64,000 nt of DNA, taken from assembly GCA_950097015.1 (NCBI GenBank), contig CATNEN010000039.1, positions 13,702,001 to 13,766,000 on the forward strand, in the 5' to 3' direction. The notes below the pieces were generated by a model, which was not told the origin of the DNA, did not search any database, and worked only from the letters and a program-made list of their open reading frames with translations. This document shows positions 3,380-13,800 of this stretch, piece after piece (position 1 is the first letter of the stretch; each line of letters opens with the position of its first letter). Origin of the DNA: Macrostomum hystrix (taxonomy: Eukaryota > Animalia > Platyhelminthes). The position numbers and the translations under genes were made by a program.

Positions 3380-4102
3380 TCAAAACAGGCTAAATTTGAT
3401 CCAATCGGGACTGTTCTCAATTTCCTGCTCAACATAGGAGTCGGCAAAGTCTAGCAGGCGACACAATTTGAGCTTGCCGTTGTACAGAACGTGCCGGCTT
3501 CTACTATCGATGGTAGCATGGTACAGGCACATCAGAGCGTTGTCGATTTGCGGAACATCAGTGAAGCAGTAGGCAGAGTGGTACAGCACTCGCTTGAATT
3601 CAGTTAACAGCCAGGCGCCGCCAGTTCTCATGCGCCTCTGCAGATTCTCAAACTCGCAGATAAAGCCGTATCGAGTGTAGCAAGTCATGTCCGCAATCAA
3701 GTGGCTTGTCTTTCTCAGACAGAACTCACCGCTGCCGCCAGTCAGGTAGTTCAGCACCGAGCTGTCATTTGGGAAAACACCGTTACCGTTGATCCTCTGC
3801 CAGCCAGCAGGGCTTTCTCCGCGAATGTCTGCGAGACTGGACAGTCCCACCCAGAGCTGGAACGGGTCAGTGTTGGCGCTGCTTATATTGCCATTCCTCA
3901 GCAGCTTTATGGACTCGTACGAGTTAACGAGCTCGCCTCCGATCAAGTCGCATTGTCTATTGGCTGAGCACCAGTTGTAGCTTTGAGCAATGTTTACAAA
4001 TACACACAAGCCAGCTTCAACGTTGAATGGAGCAGGGCATTGAAGGGCATGAGTTAGAGTCAACAGAGACCAAAGATTGGCCAGTAACAACAGTCGTAAC
4101 AT
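3380..4102 (-). CDS. Secreted C-type lectin domain protein with C-terminal PAN/apple-like segment, single exon
   Basis: Signal peptide MLRLLLLANLWSLLTLTHA; CTLD landmarks CPAPF..GLC, W..A...C..IGG.LV, LWVGL, C..RYGFICE; C-terminal C..C..YN...KLCRL pattern. Confidence 0.8.
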   Translation of the reverse strand: MLRLLLLANLWSLLTLTHALQCPAPFNVEAGLCVFVNIAQSYNWCSANRQCDLIGGELVNSYESIKLLRNGNISSANTDPFQLWVGLSSLADIRGESPAGWQRINGNGVFPNDSSVLNYLTGGSGEFCLRKTSHLIADMTCYTRYGFICEFENLQRRMRTGGAWLLTEFKRVLYHSAYCFTDVPQIDNALMCLYHATIDSRSRHVLYNGKLKLCRLLDFADSYVEQEIENSPDWIKFSLF

Positions 4103-7100
4103 TCTTAAACAAAGAGCGGATCATGAGACAATATTTTTCTGTCAACTTTATCGCCAGCTTATATCTTGAGTTTCATTCACTTTCTTTCATATTAATGAAG
4201 GATAAAATTCTCTTTTCAGTAGGAAATTTGCTACGAAACTTTCTCACCGAGGGCGTCTTGCATTAAGTAAGTCGCATTTGTTAGACTGGCAGCTGTTACC
4301 GCTCTCAAGCAGGAAAATACCAAATACGCGCTTGAGCAGCAGGTGTGTCTTATGCACTCAACAACGATTCAAAAGAGTTAGGGAGTTAATGATTCATTCG
4401 TGGCATGCCTTCATGGGATTAGAAACGAATTTAGTCATGCACCTGCATTTCGATTCTTTGTGAGTTATTTAGCCATAAGCTAAAAATCCTAATCATGCAA
4501 TACATATACACAAAGAATGCAACAAGTAAAAATACGTACGTGTCCTTACTCAATATGCATGCATTTAATTTAATTATCGCCAAGTTTTCATATTTTCTCC
4601 ATTATAAATGCATTGTATTTATAGAAAACACTAGGCCTAGTAGCTAATGTAAAGGACGGTATTTGCTGCACAACAAATTAAGCTTTGCATTATAAGTTTT
4701 GCATACACAAGCATCACGTACTGCTCGAGTATAACTGCAGGTATACTACAGTGGTCCTTGAGTCTTTCATGAGCTTCCACATTCGTAAATAAATGCATGT
4801 ACATGTTGCGGACTTTAGAATTCTGTAATACTCGACCAAACTTATATAAACACGTCTCGCTGATCGAGAATATAGACGGAGAAAATAACTATTTATTTGA
4901 TTAAAATGGACTTTTTAAAAGAGCGACAATGTTAACGTTTGACAGGAAAGAGTCTATATGAAATAGAGTTGAACGTACGTCACTAGCCTAATACATAATA
5001 ACGAAACAATTGCAGCTTATAACATATATTCTCATTGAGAACTACGTAATAAAACTATTATGTTTTAAAGGAGTATATATTTTACTCGAGTCATCCTTGA
5101 TTGTCATATGTATATCAATGTGTAATTCGATCATATAGTGCTCAGAAAGACTTTGAAAAGGTTAATGAGTCTAAATTCACGTCAGTTAAATTCAGTTCAG
5201 TCTGTACGACACAATTTACTACACTTTGAAATCGAAAAAGCTGTTAAGTATGTTGTTTACGAAATAGCAAAATTCGTCGTGAAAAATACTTTCATTAATG
5301 CACTAAATATTACGCTCCGCTAGTAATTCACATTAAAGATGGCGCTAATACAGATTGCTAAAGGTCACAAACAACATAAACTTCCGAAAATAGCAAAGTA
5401 AGACAAAAAAGTCGAAAATCTAAAATCAAAACAGTTACTCGAGACCTTAATATGAATTTCAGATGTTAAAACAAATAAAATATAACAATAATTATATTTA
5501 CAAGCTCTTTTTATTAAAAAAAAAACATTTTTTTATAGTGGCCGCCTACGACGGTCATTAATTATAATTATTAATTTTATCACGTTTTTAAAGTCTATGC
5601 AGATACTGTACCGTCTGTACGGTTGCGCTAGGCCTAGGGGAAGTAATTTTTCAAGTTTATCAATAAAATAATTTGCATTTTTTATAACATATTAGAAAAT
5701 AAATTATTTCTACTTTATTAATTTCTAAAGTTTAATCATTGCTATTTCAAGCAATCTGTGGCTCAGGATGGGCATACCACATCCACATTTAAGTGAATTG
5801 ACCTAGGTCTATCTTAGCCACACTAGGATAAGATGTTGGTTGTATAATAAATGAATATAAAAAGACGTGTTTTTAATTAAACTTTGCCTGACATCTATTT
5901 TTATTTAAAGCAATACCATTTATTTTATAATTATAGGCCTATATTTTTTACTTTTTTACTTTTACAGTACAATCAGTCGGCCTAAACTGCTAAATTAGGC
6001 CCCTACTAACTTTGTTCTTTTATTTTTTTATGAAAAAAAATTAAATTTGTTTATATTTTATTAACAAATGTGATTATGATGTTTAGCTAGGCCCTAAATT
6101 ATATTGTTGGCGGGTTGGCCAGGCTCTTTTAATTTGGAATTATGGCAATCCTATCTCCAGTTTCACATGTTTAATTTAAATAGATTTTGTAATGTCAACA
6201 GTTAAACGACTTCTTTATAGTAACAAAATAAAAGAAATGACTAACAAACAAAAAACAACCAACAAGCCACTCAGATCTCATAGTACTCTGCTCTGCTCAA
6301 ATGGTGTAGGCCCCTAGTATTGTGCCACCCAGAAAAGAATGTAACTTCCAAGTAATAAGGGTTAAGGCTTGGTAAGCTTACAAGGCAAGAATATAATCAT
6401 CTTTTCTTTCTAGAGAAGTGATGCCAAATGTTAAACATGCAAAACTTGAGGATTGTCAAAATTAGTCCTACTTTTTTATTAGTAGGCCCTAATTACAATT
6501 TTATTTTTATTTCCTTACAATGTAAACCAAACTATAGTATTCTTTCAAATTTTGACTTTAGGAATTCAACTATAAATTACATATGACATGTTATAGTCTT
6601 TCATGTATTCTTATGTATTGGTAAGAAACATCTTTTGTGTCCTACATGTAAGATGCTCCCAGATTCAGATTTAGTAAGCTCTCAGATTTTTGTTTCTAGT
6701 CATACTAAGGCTCTAATAAATTGTAGTTTACTAGGGTAATGTATCATCAACTGAACAGTGTATCTTCAAAACCAAACAAGAATTTTGACTCCTTCCTTGG
6801 TCTCGTGCAAGACAGAAACAAGCTATTGTGTTTCACAGAACAACTAATTTGAAAGTTGAAGAAATTATCTACAAGCTGAGGCATGATGTGCAATGAAGCA
6901 TTAAGAGGAAAGAAAGATATTGATGTTTCAGTAGAAATTTTTATTGCAAAAGCATACTTTTTAACATACATGCGCAACACCCGGCCGGATCGGCCGGCCG
7001 AGCCTTGCTCGAGCGGCCGAGCAAGGTAAGTCGCAAAAATGGCCACCCAAGAAAAAAATCGGACAGAAAAAACGAGCGGAAAAAAAGAAAAGAAGGCAGG

Positions 7101-7178: not shown

Positions 7179-7649
7179 GCAATCAGAGGCAACTTAGTCG
7201 CATTCCAAGGGAAGTAAGTCGCAATCAAAGGGAAGTAAGTCGCATTCAGAGGGAAGTAAGTCGCAATCAGAGGGAAGTAAGTCGCAATCAGAGGGAAGTG
7301 AGTCACAATCAGAGGGAAGTAAGTTGCATTCAGAGGGGGCTAAGTCGCATTCAGAGGGAAGTAAGTCGCAATCAGAGGGAAGTAAGTCGCATTCAGAGGG
7401 AAGTAAGTCGCAATCAGAGGGAAGTAAGTCGCATTCAGAGGGAAGTAAGTCGCAATCAGAGGGAAGTAAGTCGCATTCCAAGGTAAGTAAGTCGCAATCA
7501 GAGGGAAGTAAGTCGCATTCCAAGGTAAGTAAGTCGCATTCAGAGGGGGCTAAGTCGCATTCAGAGGGTAGTAAGTTGCAATCAGAGGGAAGTAAGTCGC
7601 ATTCAGAGGGAAGTAAGTCACATTCAGGGGGAGGTAAGTCGCAATCAGA
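7179..7649. repeat. 21-bp tandem array (GTAAGTCGCAWTCAGAGGGAA) inside the hAT element
   Basis: Direct reading; about 22 units. Confidence 0.95.
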
Positions 7650-8118
7650 TTTATTACAGTGCATTAAACTTATAGGGGTAGGAACTGGAGTTACTGAACT
7701 CAAAAAAGTCCACTCTGCAAGTCCGAATGTGAGTATTATATCTTTATATCTCTTATCACATTTTTGGCGCAAAAAATATTTCATTTTTGTAATGACCACA
7801 GACCACATAGTTTTATAAAAAATAGGCATACAGTTAAAATTTCTCTCTGGCATACATTTTATGGGCTACAGTTTGCTTCCCGGCGTACATTTGCAATTTG
7901 AATTTCTGGCACACAAGACCATTTTTCTGGCATACAGTATGACACATTCGTGAGTATAGTGATGGTGATGTTGAGCCTCATGGTCTCTGGCACCACCTGG
8001 AAGATCCGATTGGACAAGCAGGGAAGCAGCTTGACAAGCGACGCCACGCAGCTGACCTCACCAATTTCATTCACGCCGACGATCGAGTCGCCAGAGTGCA
8101 CTCTGCTGCCAGCGGAAG

Positions 8119-8182
8119 ACTAATTAGATGACGAGGCATTTTACTATTGCAACACAGTCATAGTTACCCCTGCCGTTTACCC
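8119..8182 (-). pseudogene. 64-nt fragment resembling 28S rRNA helices H69-H71
   Basis: Minus strand reads GGGTAAACGGCAGGGGTAACTATGACT-GTGTTGCAATAGTA-AAATGCCTCGTCATCTAATTAGT; conserved 28S as recalled reads GGGTAAACGGCGGGAGTAACTATGACT-CTCTTAAGGTAGCC-AAATGCCTCGTCATCTAATTAGT. Confidence 0.8.
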
Positions 8183-9356
8183 AAAAAAAAATTTGGGCAT
8201 AGGTATGTCGCATTTTTTTTTAAAAACGAAGTCGCACGGCAGGTGTAAATTTGGGAGGTTGCGCATGTATGCTTTTTAACAACATTTTTTCAGTATGTAC
8301 TTTAGACAAAGATTGTATGTGGTTGCTTGCCAATTAAATGACCATTAATGTAGTTATTTATAGAGCATGAAAAATGCTTTCAAATGACATAATTCATGAT
8401 AGTTCACTCCTTAAAATAAGATTAAACCACTCACTCAAATTGTAAAACCAAACATCAAATTCTCTGTTTGGTTTGAAGATACATGAAAATCATTGTTCGG
8501 TTTTAGATAAAAAGCAGGAATAACTTTTTTCTATTTGACAAAATGACAAAAGCAAATACTTTTTAGAAAGATGTAACTGTTTTCTATAACTTGGCTTTTG
8601 ATTTATCATGATATCTTAAATAGAAAATCTGTAGCTTAGGTTTGAAGTTAAAAAAATACACATTCTTGTTTGGTTGATGATACATTACCCTAATCTTAGG
8701 CCTAATATATACTCTCCTTTTCTTTATATAAACTTATCCAAAACACTTGCTTACTAATAATAATCCTGTCTAGAAATTTTATTGCTTTATAGTAATAATT
8801 AGGGCAAAACTCAACAAAACTCTTTCTTTCACTTAAATTTAAGTATTTGATTGTAATGTTTTTTAGTTTTTAATAGCAGAACCCCTGATCAAGCCGTGAA
8901 ATTTTAGCAGGCAAAAATGCATGTACATATACAGTATTGGGAGAGGAAAAATGTAGTGCATTAAAACTAAATATGGTATTACAACAATTAGAATAGGGTT
9001 TCAGTATAGGAGAATTAAAGCACTTTTTAAATAGCAATTAAAGTTTAAATTATGAAAACTTGTAATATTTAATAAAACATTGGGTCTGCCATAATTACTT
9101 GCCAAAACTAAGCAGTAAGTAATGTAATCTTTCCTATGTCATTCATAACATTAAAGCTTTTATTTGCTAGCTACCACTAGATACTAGTTACAAAATTAAC
9201 ATTGAAATAGTTTTCTTTGATTTGATTATTATTTTTTTTCAAGTAAATCAAAAACAAACTAGATCAATCAAACCAATTTAAACTTGCAATACCCAGATAC
9301 TCTTAAAAGCTATATTTCATTTGTAATGAAACTAGATGTAGAATTGCACAGATGTA

Positions 9357-10861: not shown

Positions 10862-13800
10862 ATGAATATAGAGGTGGAAGATATTCCCATTGACGAAAAT
10901 CCGTGGAATCCCAAAGACGACGAGCAGGAGCGAAGAAATCGTCGACGCTCGCACGCTGCCGAACTTCTGTCTGGCGCCGGCATCGTTGACAATGCCGGCG
11001 ACGGCGCGGGAGCCGAGGCGGCCGCCTCAGCCGCTGCCAGCGCTGCTATCAATCGCATGTCAGCCAAACAGCTAACTGAGCACTATGAAGATTGCATTAA
11101 ACTATCGGCCGAGGGTAAAATATCGGCTAAGAACGCCTTCGCCTTGCATCTGATCGACTACCTAGCGGGCATGGTTAAACAGGATAACTTTGGCGGATTT
11201 CAGGTAACAGATATCATTAGTTTCTGACGGCTTTGGTCACGACGTTCTTGATTTCTTATTATCTGAATTAATTGTTGGAGGGGCCTTTATATATAGAAGT
11301 ACATTGCTCTCCTATCTTATTAACACTTTTCTATGCGCTAGAAGAGAGTAATACAGTACCTAAATATAGTTTTTCTATACTATACGTCCACAGTATGCTT
11401 ATTTAGTTTAAAGAAATAATAAGGGTTTAGGCCATAGACAATTGCATCTATTAAATTCTAAGCTGCTTTGATACTGAAATACCATGTCTACACTGCCTGT
11501 CAATGAGAAAGTCAGGGCAGATGTACAGAACTGTGTGAGCGTATGCCTGCGTACTGTATCTGTGTGAGTGTGTGCTCAGGAGTCAGCGAAATAGGCATAA
11601 TTGCCTCACTAGCTGGCTGCCGGTCCACTGTCACCAAATGATGTGCCATTGTCCGCAGCCCTCCTCCAAATGTTATTATTAATATTATTATTATTACTCT
11701 CGACTTCCAATTTTACTTCAACTGTGGTCTTTGGTTCGAATCCCCTACTTTAAGTGCACTTATAATCACACCCGTGCCAGGTGGCTTCCAGTTCACTGGA
11801 CGCGGGCGCCAAAATCTACGCCGGCAGGGTGGACGCCGTACATCAGGAGGCCTACAAAGTACTGGGCGGCTTGGGTCGCTCATCGGCGGCCGATAAGAAA
11901 GGCGGTGCAGCCAGCGATGACGACGACGAAGGCGGTGGCGGCGGCGCCGATGACGACGCCGACGAAGATAATCGACAGTCGGCCGCGGCGAAGCGCAAAG
12001 CTGAACGAAAGCGTCGACCAAAGGCTGTGATCGCTGGCAACTTGTCTAGAATCCGGCTGAAACCGACTAGTCTCAGATTCGACGTGGATCCTCTGTTTCA
12101 ACAGCAGGCCGCCGCCTACGACGATGGCGGCACTGGCGAGCTGCGTCTAAACAATGTCTGCGTGCTGGACAATGCCTGCGAGATCCTGCTAGACTCGGAT
12201 GCATCAGTCTGCATTGGCGCACCAGCTAATAGACCTGATGCTGGCCTAAAACAGACCTGTGCCCTGCCTGCCGACATCACAGGTCGACTGGAAGCTCTTC
12301 TAATTAAACCCGAGAACAAAATGGATGACCTGGACAATGTTCAAGAGACCGACAATGTCGAGCTAGACGAAGATATGCCGGCGCTCTGTATCGCTTTTCG
12401 CGAATTTTCTTTCCTCCAACGCCGCGGCGGCAACGGTTTCAATGGTGATGCCACATTGGGCTTCGGCGGCAATGCTGATCAGAGTGCCGTCCTGGCTGAC
12501 TTTGTTGCCCGGCTTCCGCCGCCCGAGGACGACCTACCAGTTGACGACGATCGCGACGACTGTAATCCTGCTGGCGACTTTGACGACGATGATGGCGACC
12601 TGAATCACATAGGCAATACGGCTATGCAGATTGATATGTGCGAAGAACGGGACGCTGTTGTAGTCCAGACTGCCGATACACAGATTGGCGACAGCTTGTA
12701 AGTAACTTTTTTACATGTTTCTGATTCTGATTAGGTTAAACGGCGAGAGCAACTATACCATGATTTTAGGTATTTAATGCCTCGTCATGTGACAAGTAGT
12801 TTTTTATCTACAACTGCTAAATTTAGTAACCTTAGAATGCGTATTAAAAGTAGGACTGCCAAGCCATTTTGCCGCCCGAATGCTAACAGCGTTGGGTGGT
12901 GACTGATTGGCTGACAGACTAGGCGTGGGTGTCCTGTGGTTGAGCTGCGCCTAATATTTAGGCTTGATCAGTGAAATCTGAGAAATTCTCATCAGGGTGT
13001 CCATAGTGGCCTAGTTCCACCTGTTGTAGCCCTTGAAGGTCCAGCAGTTCGTCTAGATAAAGGTAGGTGACCACCGAAGACGGAGATGATGCAGGCACAT
13101 TCGGGTGACACGGAGATAAATTTTGAAGGCCTGGCAAGGCGCACTGAGGCGTAGTGCTAATTCGTGTATTTGGGTGTATGAAATACACTAGCGCTAATGG
13201 GAAGAATCTGACCTTCAGCCAGAACCATTGAATATCTCGACGGTCTCAAGAGCTGGCGAGCGACTTGATTCTGAACTTGAATCAGACTCGAACAGAAAAT
13301 GCGCAACAAAAAGTTTGCCCGTGTTCTTGACCTTGTCGTGTCCTTGCGTTGCTCCGTTCTGGTGAAGAAAAGCCCCGTCTTGGTAGTTCTACTGTTAAAC
13401 ATTCAGGTGTTGGCTTAGCCTCCGTTTTTTATTTTTCGATACATATCGGCTAGGATTTTTCTATCGATCACCTTCGCCACCCAAAACCTGTCGCAGTCAT
13501 CCGAACGCTAGCAGAAATTTTGTGGAAACTCTGCGCGACATGCTGTCTGATCGTTACGCCTACATGGCGTCGCTTGGCGTTCCCGGCGCCAAGAGCAGCG
13601 GCGGTGAAATCTTTCGCCTATTCTCCGATCCGTCCTGCTGGCGTAAAAAGTGCAAACTGACTACGCTCTTCTCTAAATGCGGCAGCGCCGTGTCTGGCGG
13701 GGCGAAATCCGCGGCCATCGCCGGCTCCGAAGCACCTGACGATGCTGGCAAATTCTCCAACGCGCAATCTTCAGAATCGGCGGCTTCGTCGATAGCTCCG

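Follow-up and report, generated by a model that had tools for sequence, protein, structure and literature searches.

A copy of the R2 target region of 28S rDNA carried by a hAT-like MITE of Macrostomum hystrix is one of more than 200 dispersed look-alikes with conserved arms and unrelated cores

We analysed a 64,000-nucleotide stretch of the Macrostomum hystrix genome (assembly GCA_950097015.1, contig CATNEN010000039.1, positions 13,702,001 to 13,766,000, forward strand), referred to below as the window. Between positions 6965 and 8271 the window holds a non-autonomous, hAT-like DNA transposon (MITE), which carries a 64-nt piece resembling the 28S rRNA gene around the insertion site of the R2 retrotransposon. 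A second, independent piece of this kind lies further along the window. Positions in 28S are numbered from the R2 insertion point between G-1 and T+1, a numbering that reproduces the published A-31ACGGCGGGA-22 (PMC10499050). The features are as follows.

6957-6964: left target-site duplication (TSD) CTTTTTAA, identical to 8272-8279
6965-6978 (+): left terminal inverted repeat (TIR) CATACATGCGCAAC
7179-7649: internal tandem array with a 21-bp unit, 22.4 copies (TRF)
7969-8110: MITE-internal segment next to the look-alike
8119-8141 (-): right arm, 28S positions +6 to +28 (AAATGCCTCGTCATCTAATTAGT), 23/23 to host 28S, overlapping the published downstream R2 ZnF-Myb footprint (+8 to +20)
8142-8155 (-): rewritten core, 28S positions -8 to +5 (GTGTTGCAATAGTA against host CTCTTAAGGTAGCC), 6/14; keeps T-6, T-5 and T+1 but has C at A-3
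8156-8182 (-): left arm, 28S positions -36 to -10, 25/27, containing the RUM region (-34 to -22) with G-25->A and A-22->G
8183-8221 (-): 39 nt between the look-alike and the family-wide terminus, shared only by an 18-copy subfamily
8222-8271 (-): terminal 50 nt (TIR at 8258-8271 plus subterminal sequence), shared at about 88% by at least 600 candidate loci
8272-8279: right TSD CTTTTTAA
12734-12797 (+): second look-alike, with native spacing, a different core and a degenerate right end

The minus strand of 8119-8182 was compared base by base with the host's own 28S genes, read from rDNA arrays on three contigs of the assembly (numbered here C15, C17 and C42; loci L018-L030). It matches at 25/27, 6/14 and 23/23 bases, 54/64 in total, with no indel. 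BLAST homology between the element and rDNA covers exactly these 64 nt, and the chance of packing 8 of 10 mismatches into one 14-nt window of 64 is about 7e-4. The sequence-only reading had named two outcomes that would count against it. One was a host or organellar LSU gene that itself has the altered core; instead, the host gene has the canonical core, and the native 14-mer occurs 15 times, always in rDNA contigs, so the altered core is not a host or organellar variant. The other was a piece unique to this copy, with evenly scattered substitutions in other copies; instead, all 18 copies of the subfamily carry the same altered core. The observation of a 28S piece with its changes clustered in the central 14 nt is therefore correct. 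No Rfam hit was obtained with the 64-mer at gathering or permissive thresholds, as it is too short for the LSU model, which does hit the true 28S at the same bases.

The carrier has exact 14-bp TIRs (0.34 matches expected by chance at up to 2 mismatches) and an 8-bp TSD, and its internal ORFs have no Pfam hit. The assignment to hAT rests on the 8-bp TSD only, since no autonomous partner was sought. The 64-mer lies 76 bp inside the right TIR (89 bp from the end of the element), and there is no copy near the left end. Eighteen loci carry the 64-mer with the same core together with the 39 nt that separate it from the terminal 50 nt, whereas the terminal 50 nt alone has at least 604 candidate matches. 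The look-alike is therefore cargo of a small subfamily and not a requirement of the transposon. In an alignment of 17 copies, the whole terminal stretch of about 270 nt is uniformly conserved and the 64-mer does not stand out. The neighbouring segment 7969-8110 has 68–74% matches over about 140 nt at 10 or more other loci that lack the look-alike; it looks like a diverged repeated (possibly coding) sequence, has no Pfam hit, and its nature is open.

Seven weaker genomic hits of the 64-mer had unrelated flanks but the same plan, two 28S arms around a different core. To explore the extent of this family, we searched the genome with separate parts of the piece, using reversed sequences as controls. 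A bipartite pattern of both arms with a variable gap gave 48 hits (15 in rDNA, 33 dispersed; control 0). At up to 3 mismatches, the left-arm 21-mer gave 251 hits (control 0) and the right-arm 21-mer 263 (control 0). In contrast, the adjacent 21 bases of 28S (+29 to +49) gave 23 hits, all but one in rDNA or R2-bearing rDNA pieces (control 0). The 15 exact hits of the native core are all in rDNA contigs, and its one-mismatch versions are at or below the control level. A 20-bp satellite (unit GGGGAGTGACTATTCAGTCA; locus L163, C8:3621580-3621860) resembles part of the left arm by chance and inflates short-word counts. After removal of rDNA and MITE copies, about 200–220 dispersed loci remain, of which about 110 were read. 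About three quarters of loci chosen by the right arm have a recognisable left arm, and 36 of 41 loci chosen by the left arm have a right arm. For 10 right-arm-only loci no partner arm was found within 400 nt, which gives no sign of an insertion in the core. Flanks of different loci are unrelated, no TIR-like sequence lies within 150 nt, and TSD lengths equal those of a permuted control. No two of 34 native-spacing cores share 70% or more identity. Two metagenome scans, one for the exact MITE core and one for arms with a non-native core, gave 0 hits; collections of eukaryote genomes were not searched.

The distance from ACTAT to GCCTCG falls into two classes, 21–23 nt in 51 of 69 loci (native is 22) and 10–13 nt in 15 of 69, that is, native spacing or about one helical turn less. 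Identity to 28S is about 90% in each arm and 35% at -13 to +5, roughly background for this AT-rich sequence. Conservation is high at -34 to -26, dips at -25/-24, is high at -23 to -14, is at background from -13 to +5 apart from A+2, and is high at +6 to +27. Mismatches are strongly uneven along the left arm (chi-square p = 1e-14). A-22, G-21 and A-19 are unchanged in 44/44 loci, G-23 in 43/44 and C-26 in 42/44, while G-25, G-24 and G-28 are changed in 19, 18 and 15 of 44. Some arm variants may be inherited from shared ancestors rather than being independent events. The two partners of the CpG C-26/G-25 behave differently (2 C->T against 14 G->A), and the CpG C+14/G+15 never changes in 25 loci. 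General CpG decay does not explain this; site-specific constraint does.

We next compared the family with R2 biochemistry. In Bombyx R2, the upstream motif (RUM, -34 to -22) has the functional consensus A-31 WWW GC NNN A-22 and is read by the Myb domain (-34 to -31), an RT loop (the central GC) and the N-terminal zinc finger (minor groove, -23 to -18). Cutting needs T-6 T N A N N T+1 (RASIN), positions -6 to +5 are melted, and the RUM-to-cut distance tolerates only +1 (PMC10499050). In the flatworm family, changes pile up at -29/-28 (mostly to A or T) and at -25/-24, while C-26, A-22 and the zinc-finger tract are kept, so that arm variation falls largely on positions that the Bombyx screen leaves free. 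Published DNase footprints of ZnF-Myb domains are -37 to -25 and -21 to -15, and for lineage D also -2 to +6, +8 to +15 and +17 to +20 (PMC11204384). The arms coincide with these footprints and the unconserved core is the catalytic region. The fit is not perfect. G-23 is kept here (43/44 loci) but is 'N' in the Bombyx screen, and downstream DNA (+6 to +37) is dispensable for first-strand cutting in Bombyx, yet here the right arm is as conserved as the left, and to +27, beyond the known footprint (+20). The Bombyx rules may not transfer to a flatworm R2.

R2 elements are present in this genome; their copies were read without consensus building or repair. Canonical 3' junctions read .../TAGCCAAATGCC (loci L079, L080 and L082). 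An N-terminal ORF with one C2H2 finger and a Myb-like region aligns to Bombyx R2 residues 97–208 (ZnF and Myb; E = 3e-10); Lys149 is conserved, but Arg125, which reads A-22 in Bombyx, is Thr in the copy examined. R2 N-terminal matches at C17:89397-89843 and C42:33814-34035 lie in open frames of 1179 and 1108 aa inside rDNA contigs. They share only 37–46% identity with the copy on C1, so there are at least two or three R2 lineages, some apparently intact. A 5' junction was read at L165 (C1:23269300-23271330), where the junction of an R2 copy stops at 28S position -5 and is followed by a 165-nt piece of a more 3' part of 28S (Rfam LSU positions 2623–2763), then a second GACTCTCTTAAGG, before the R2 leader. 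A locus on C30 that looked like an R2 5' junction (L125/L164, C30:2240589-2240709) is a unique 28S piece with true upstream 28S flank; it ends at -6, inside the R2 cutting region, continues into single-copy DNA, and may be the relic of a break at the R2 site.

By the Bombyx rule, 1 of 34 native-spacing loci keeps all four key cutting bases and 7 keep three, against 1.3 with all four expected from single-position frequencies. The cutting motif therefore looks unconstrained rather than avoided, and nothing shows selection against cutting. The MITE core reads TTGCAAT, with three of the four key bases and C at -3, and thus does not match RASIN. The MITE copy also departs from the RUM consensus, having G at -22 where the solo loci have A in 44/44. 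One local tandem set of paralogues (L158) allows a direct rate comparison, with 1 difference in 52 positions of the arms, 7 in 48 of the flank and 4–5 in 5 of the core. This agrees with constrained arms and hints at core-targeted change faster than in neutral DNA, although the sample is too small to build on.

To ask whether the module acts as DNA or as RNA, we examined its placement in host genes and its fold. Orientation in Pfam-supported genes is mixed, about 6 sense (SERCA, DEAD-box helicase, FERM, caspase just after the stop codon, TRRAP and a FERM_C exon) and 6–8 antisense (including HECT, PIP5K, Ufd2, CN-hydrolase, MFS_5 and a kinase gene). Core hairpins fold well at some loci but overall no better than shuffled cores (mean z = -0.4, p = 0.1), and the MITE copy has no significant fold on either strand (z = -0.4 to -1.0). 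Each rDNA spacer has three short-class look-alikes just beyond the 28S 3' end (L159, C17:4250-4950), inverted relative to the gene and with their own right-arm variant (TCCTCGTCAGCT); a similar pair lies outside the arrays on C1 (L161, C1:16471600-16471900). Two spacing classes about 10 bp apart make sense for a protein reading two half-sites on one face of duplex DNA but not for an RNA, and we therefore favour a DNA-level role.

The module nevertheless looks intron-like. Its ends read G/GTAAAC ... CTAATTAG/T, it carries CTAAT and ends in TTAG, and the flanking -1 base is G in 50/69 loci. A crude test of exon adjacency was not significant. In a refined test, five of 31 modules lie 5–45 nt downstream of a 5' splice-site-like GTRA that closes an open frame of 60 codons or more on the same strand, against 3.5% of control positions (p = 0.004). 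Examples are in the SERCA, DEAD-box, FERM, TRRAP and condensin genes, and the look-alikes concerned (L032, L035, L047, L076 and window 12698-12797, with L074 below) sit 12–37 nt downstream of 5' splice sites; the condensin case is the second look-alike of the window, which starts 36 nt after the GT donor of a condensin-subunit-2 (Pfam Cnd2) exon ending at 12697. One further case (L074) is antisense, 12 nt after a donor. In the donor-side sense cases the left arm faces the nearby exon edge, whereas in L074 the right arm does. The host introns are much longer than the module, and sense copies sit within them, 17–37 nt after the real donor, so the module is not itself the intron. A docking model does not explain this bias. 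A TRRAP intron (L076:1480-1900, C38:20.825 Mb) holds two look-alikes in inverted orientation with the left arms facing outward, and another locus (L160, C2:1865304-1865444) has inverted left arms 100 nt apart; both arrangements resemble long terminal inverted repeats.

Altogether, the best-supported reading is that the look-alikes are docking sites for R2 protein, or for a factor with the same specificity, that lack a cutting site and whose arms are kept by constraint, a reading that we consider about as likely as not. In this view, the left arm (about -35 to -14) contains the motif read by the N-terminal zinc finger, Myb domain and RT loop, and the right arm (about +6 to +27) overlaps the downstream half-site that lineage-D R2 zinc-finger/Myb domains also bind. 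The stretch between them (-13 to +5), which the R2 endonuclease melts and cuts, is unconstrained and now has background-like sequence, so that R2 protein could dock but would usually find no proper cutting site at the required distance and nothing would be inserted. The analysis itself establishes the anatomy of the piece, the family and its restriction to -35 to +28, the position-specific conservation of the arms, the spacing classes, the presence of R2 with a ZnF-Myb N-terminus and the cargo status in the MITE; that R2 protein is the binder, that it binds without cutting, and any benefit to the host (sponge or decoy) or other use are inferences, binding and cleavage not having been assayed. 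One look-alike was picked up as cargo by a small subfamily of the large MITE family and copied 18 times. Given its change at an otherwise invariant base and its lack of extra conservation, the MITE-borne copy is most likely an inert passenger that may no longer meet the family's own rules. The interpretation offered by the sequence-only reading is partly supported: it is right about a 28S H69–H71 piece in a TIR/TSD DNA transposon and about changes non-randomly centred on the R2 cutting region, which about 200 independent loci replicate. However, its 'uncleavable' is too strong; it holds for most copies but is not shown to be selected; its antisense or small-RNA source has no support; and its decoy function is an untested hypothesis.

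Other explanations were considered. The look-alikes could be functionless survivors of 28S pieces scattered by an unknown route, from which copies with a cuttable core were lost or scrambled by R2, leaving relics with arms that are merely younger or slower to decay. The absence of native cores outside the rDNA among more than 200 arm-bearing loci, the fast-changing core in L158, the lack of extra conservation in the MITE copies and the long R2 frames are consistent with this. We nevertheless regard it as unlikely, because one or two changes would be enough to stop cutting, yet the cores are at background identity. Moreover, spacing is not spread as expected from break repair, arm changes are position-specific with CpG asymmetry, the L158 arms differ less than their flank, the key cutting bases are not depleted, and no look-alike interrupted by R2 was seen among the about 110 read. 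Less likely still, the sites could bind a host regulatory or architectural protein that shares, or was derived from, R2's target specificity, having been spread by transposons since decayed, with the MITE as the latest carrier. Position-specific constraint, the two spacing classes, independence of orientation, right-arm-only loci with 18/18 identity, a genic location and the spacer copies would fit. However, a search for a domesticated ZnF-Myb gene without a reverse transcriptase, admittedly a weak one, found only R2 copies, and the arms are identical to 28S exactly over the R2 footprint and stop there, which points to R2 itself.

An RNA-level element, either a mini-intron-like or splice-related module or a source of sense or antisense 28S-like small RNAs, has in its favour the GT..AG ends and donor proximity, but we consider it improbable given the mixed orientation, the longer host introns, the lack of a significant fold or Rfam family and the inverted spacer copies. 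A cis-acting, subterminal transposase-binding region of the MITE would fit the position of the piece in the well-conserved terminal 270 nt, but is already close to refuted, since only 18 of at least 600 relatives carry it and about 200 look-alikes have no TIR nearby. Most far-reaching, and doubtful at present, is the hypothesis that this genome maintains more than 200 docking sites under purifying selection, each an upstream RUM plus a downstream half-site at fixed helical phase without the cutting site. These would form a genome-wide sponge or decoy for a site-specific retrotransposon, or a regulatory network built from its target site, seeded in part by MITEs and also installed three times in every rDNA spacer. 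The present data do not separate a decoy or sponge from co-opted regulatory sites or from a by-product of R2 activity.

Compared with the R2 target site itself, the look-alikes have identical or near-identical arms over -35 to -14 and +6 to +27, but they are not in rDNA, the cutting motif is absent in 33 of 34 native-spacing loci and in the short class, and no R2 insertion was seen in them. As in Pack-MITE-like capture, a TIR/TSD element without transposase carries foreign internal DNA that only one subfamily has, but the cargo is a 64-bp member of a dispersed family rather than a gene fragment, and the donor locus was not identified. As with transposon-spread protein-binding sites such as CTCF sites carried by SINEs, many copies of a long bipartite motif occur in either orientation with a current carrier; here, however, the motif is a retrotransposon's own target site, and most copies show no carrier remains. 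Dispersed rDNA fragments and pseudogenes (PMC5381670) are likewise rRNA-gene-derived sequence outside the arrays, but the present family has sharp boundaries at -36/+28 and non-uniform decay. Pokey, a piggyBac element using TTAA in the same 28S stretch (PMC3849761), inserts into the site, whereas here the transposon carries a copy of the site in which the TTAA is gone (TTGC).

R2 is the textbook site-specific retrotransposon and is being engineered for gene insertion, while its off-target landscape and host control are poorly understood. Full-text literature searches found no report of a genome holding hundreds of non-rDNA copies of just the R2 protein's footprint, with binding bases kept and the cutting region free. 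If the arms do bind R2 protein, the family would be a natural experiment on which target bases matter for docking and which for cutting in a non-insect R2, and a candidate, directly testable host or element strategy (titration, parking or co-option). If they do not, its sharp boundaries, fixed spacing and position-specific conservation still need an explanation. Elsewhere in the window, a 240-aa open frame at 3383-4102 (-) has a C-type lectin domain (Pfam Lectin_C, E = 5e-6).
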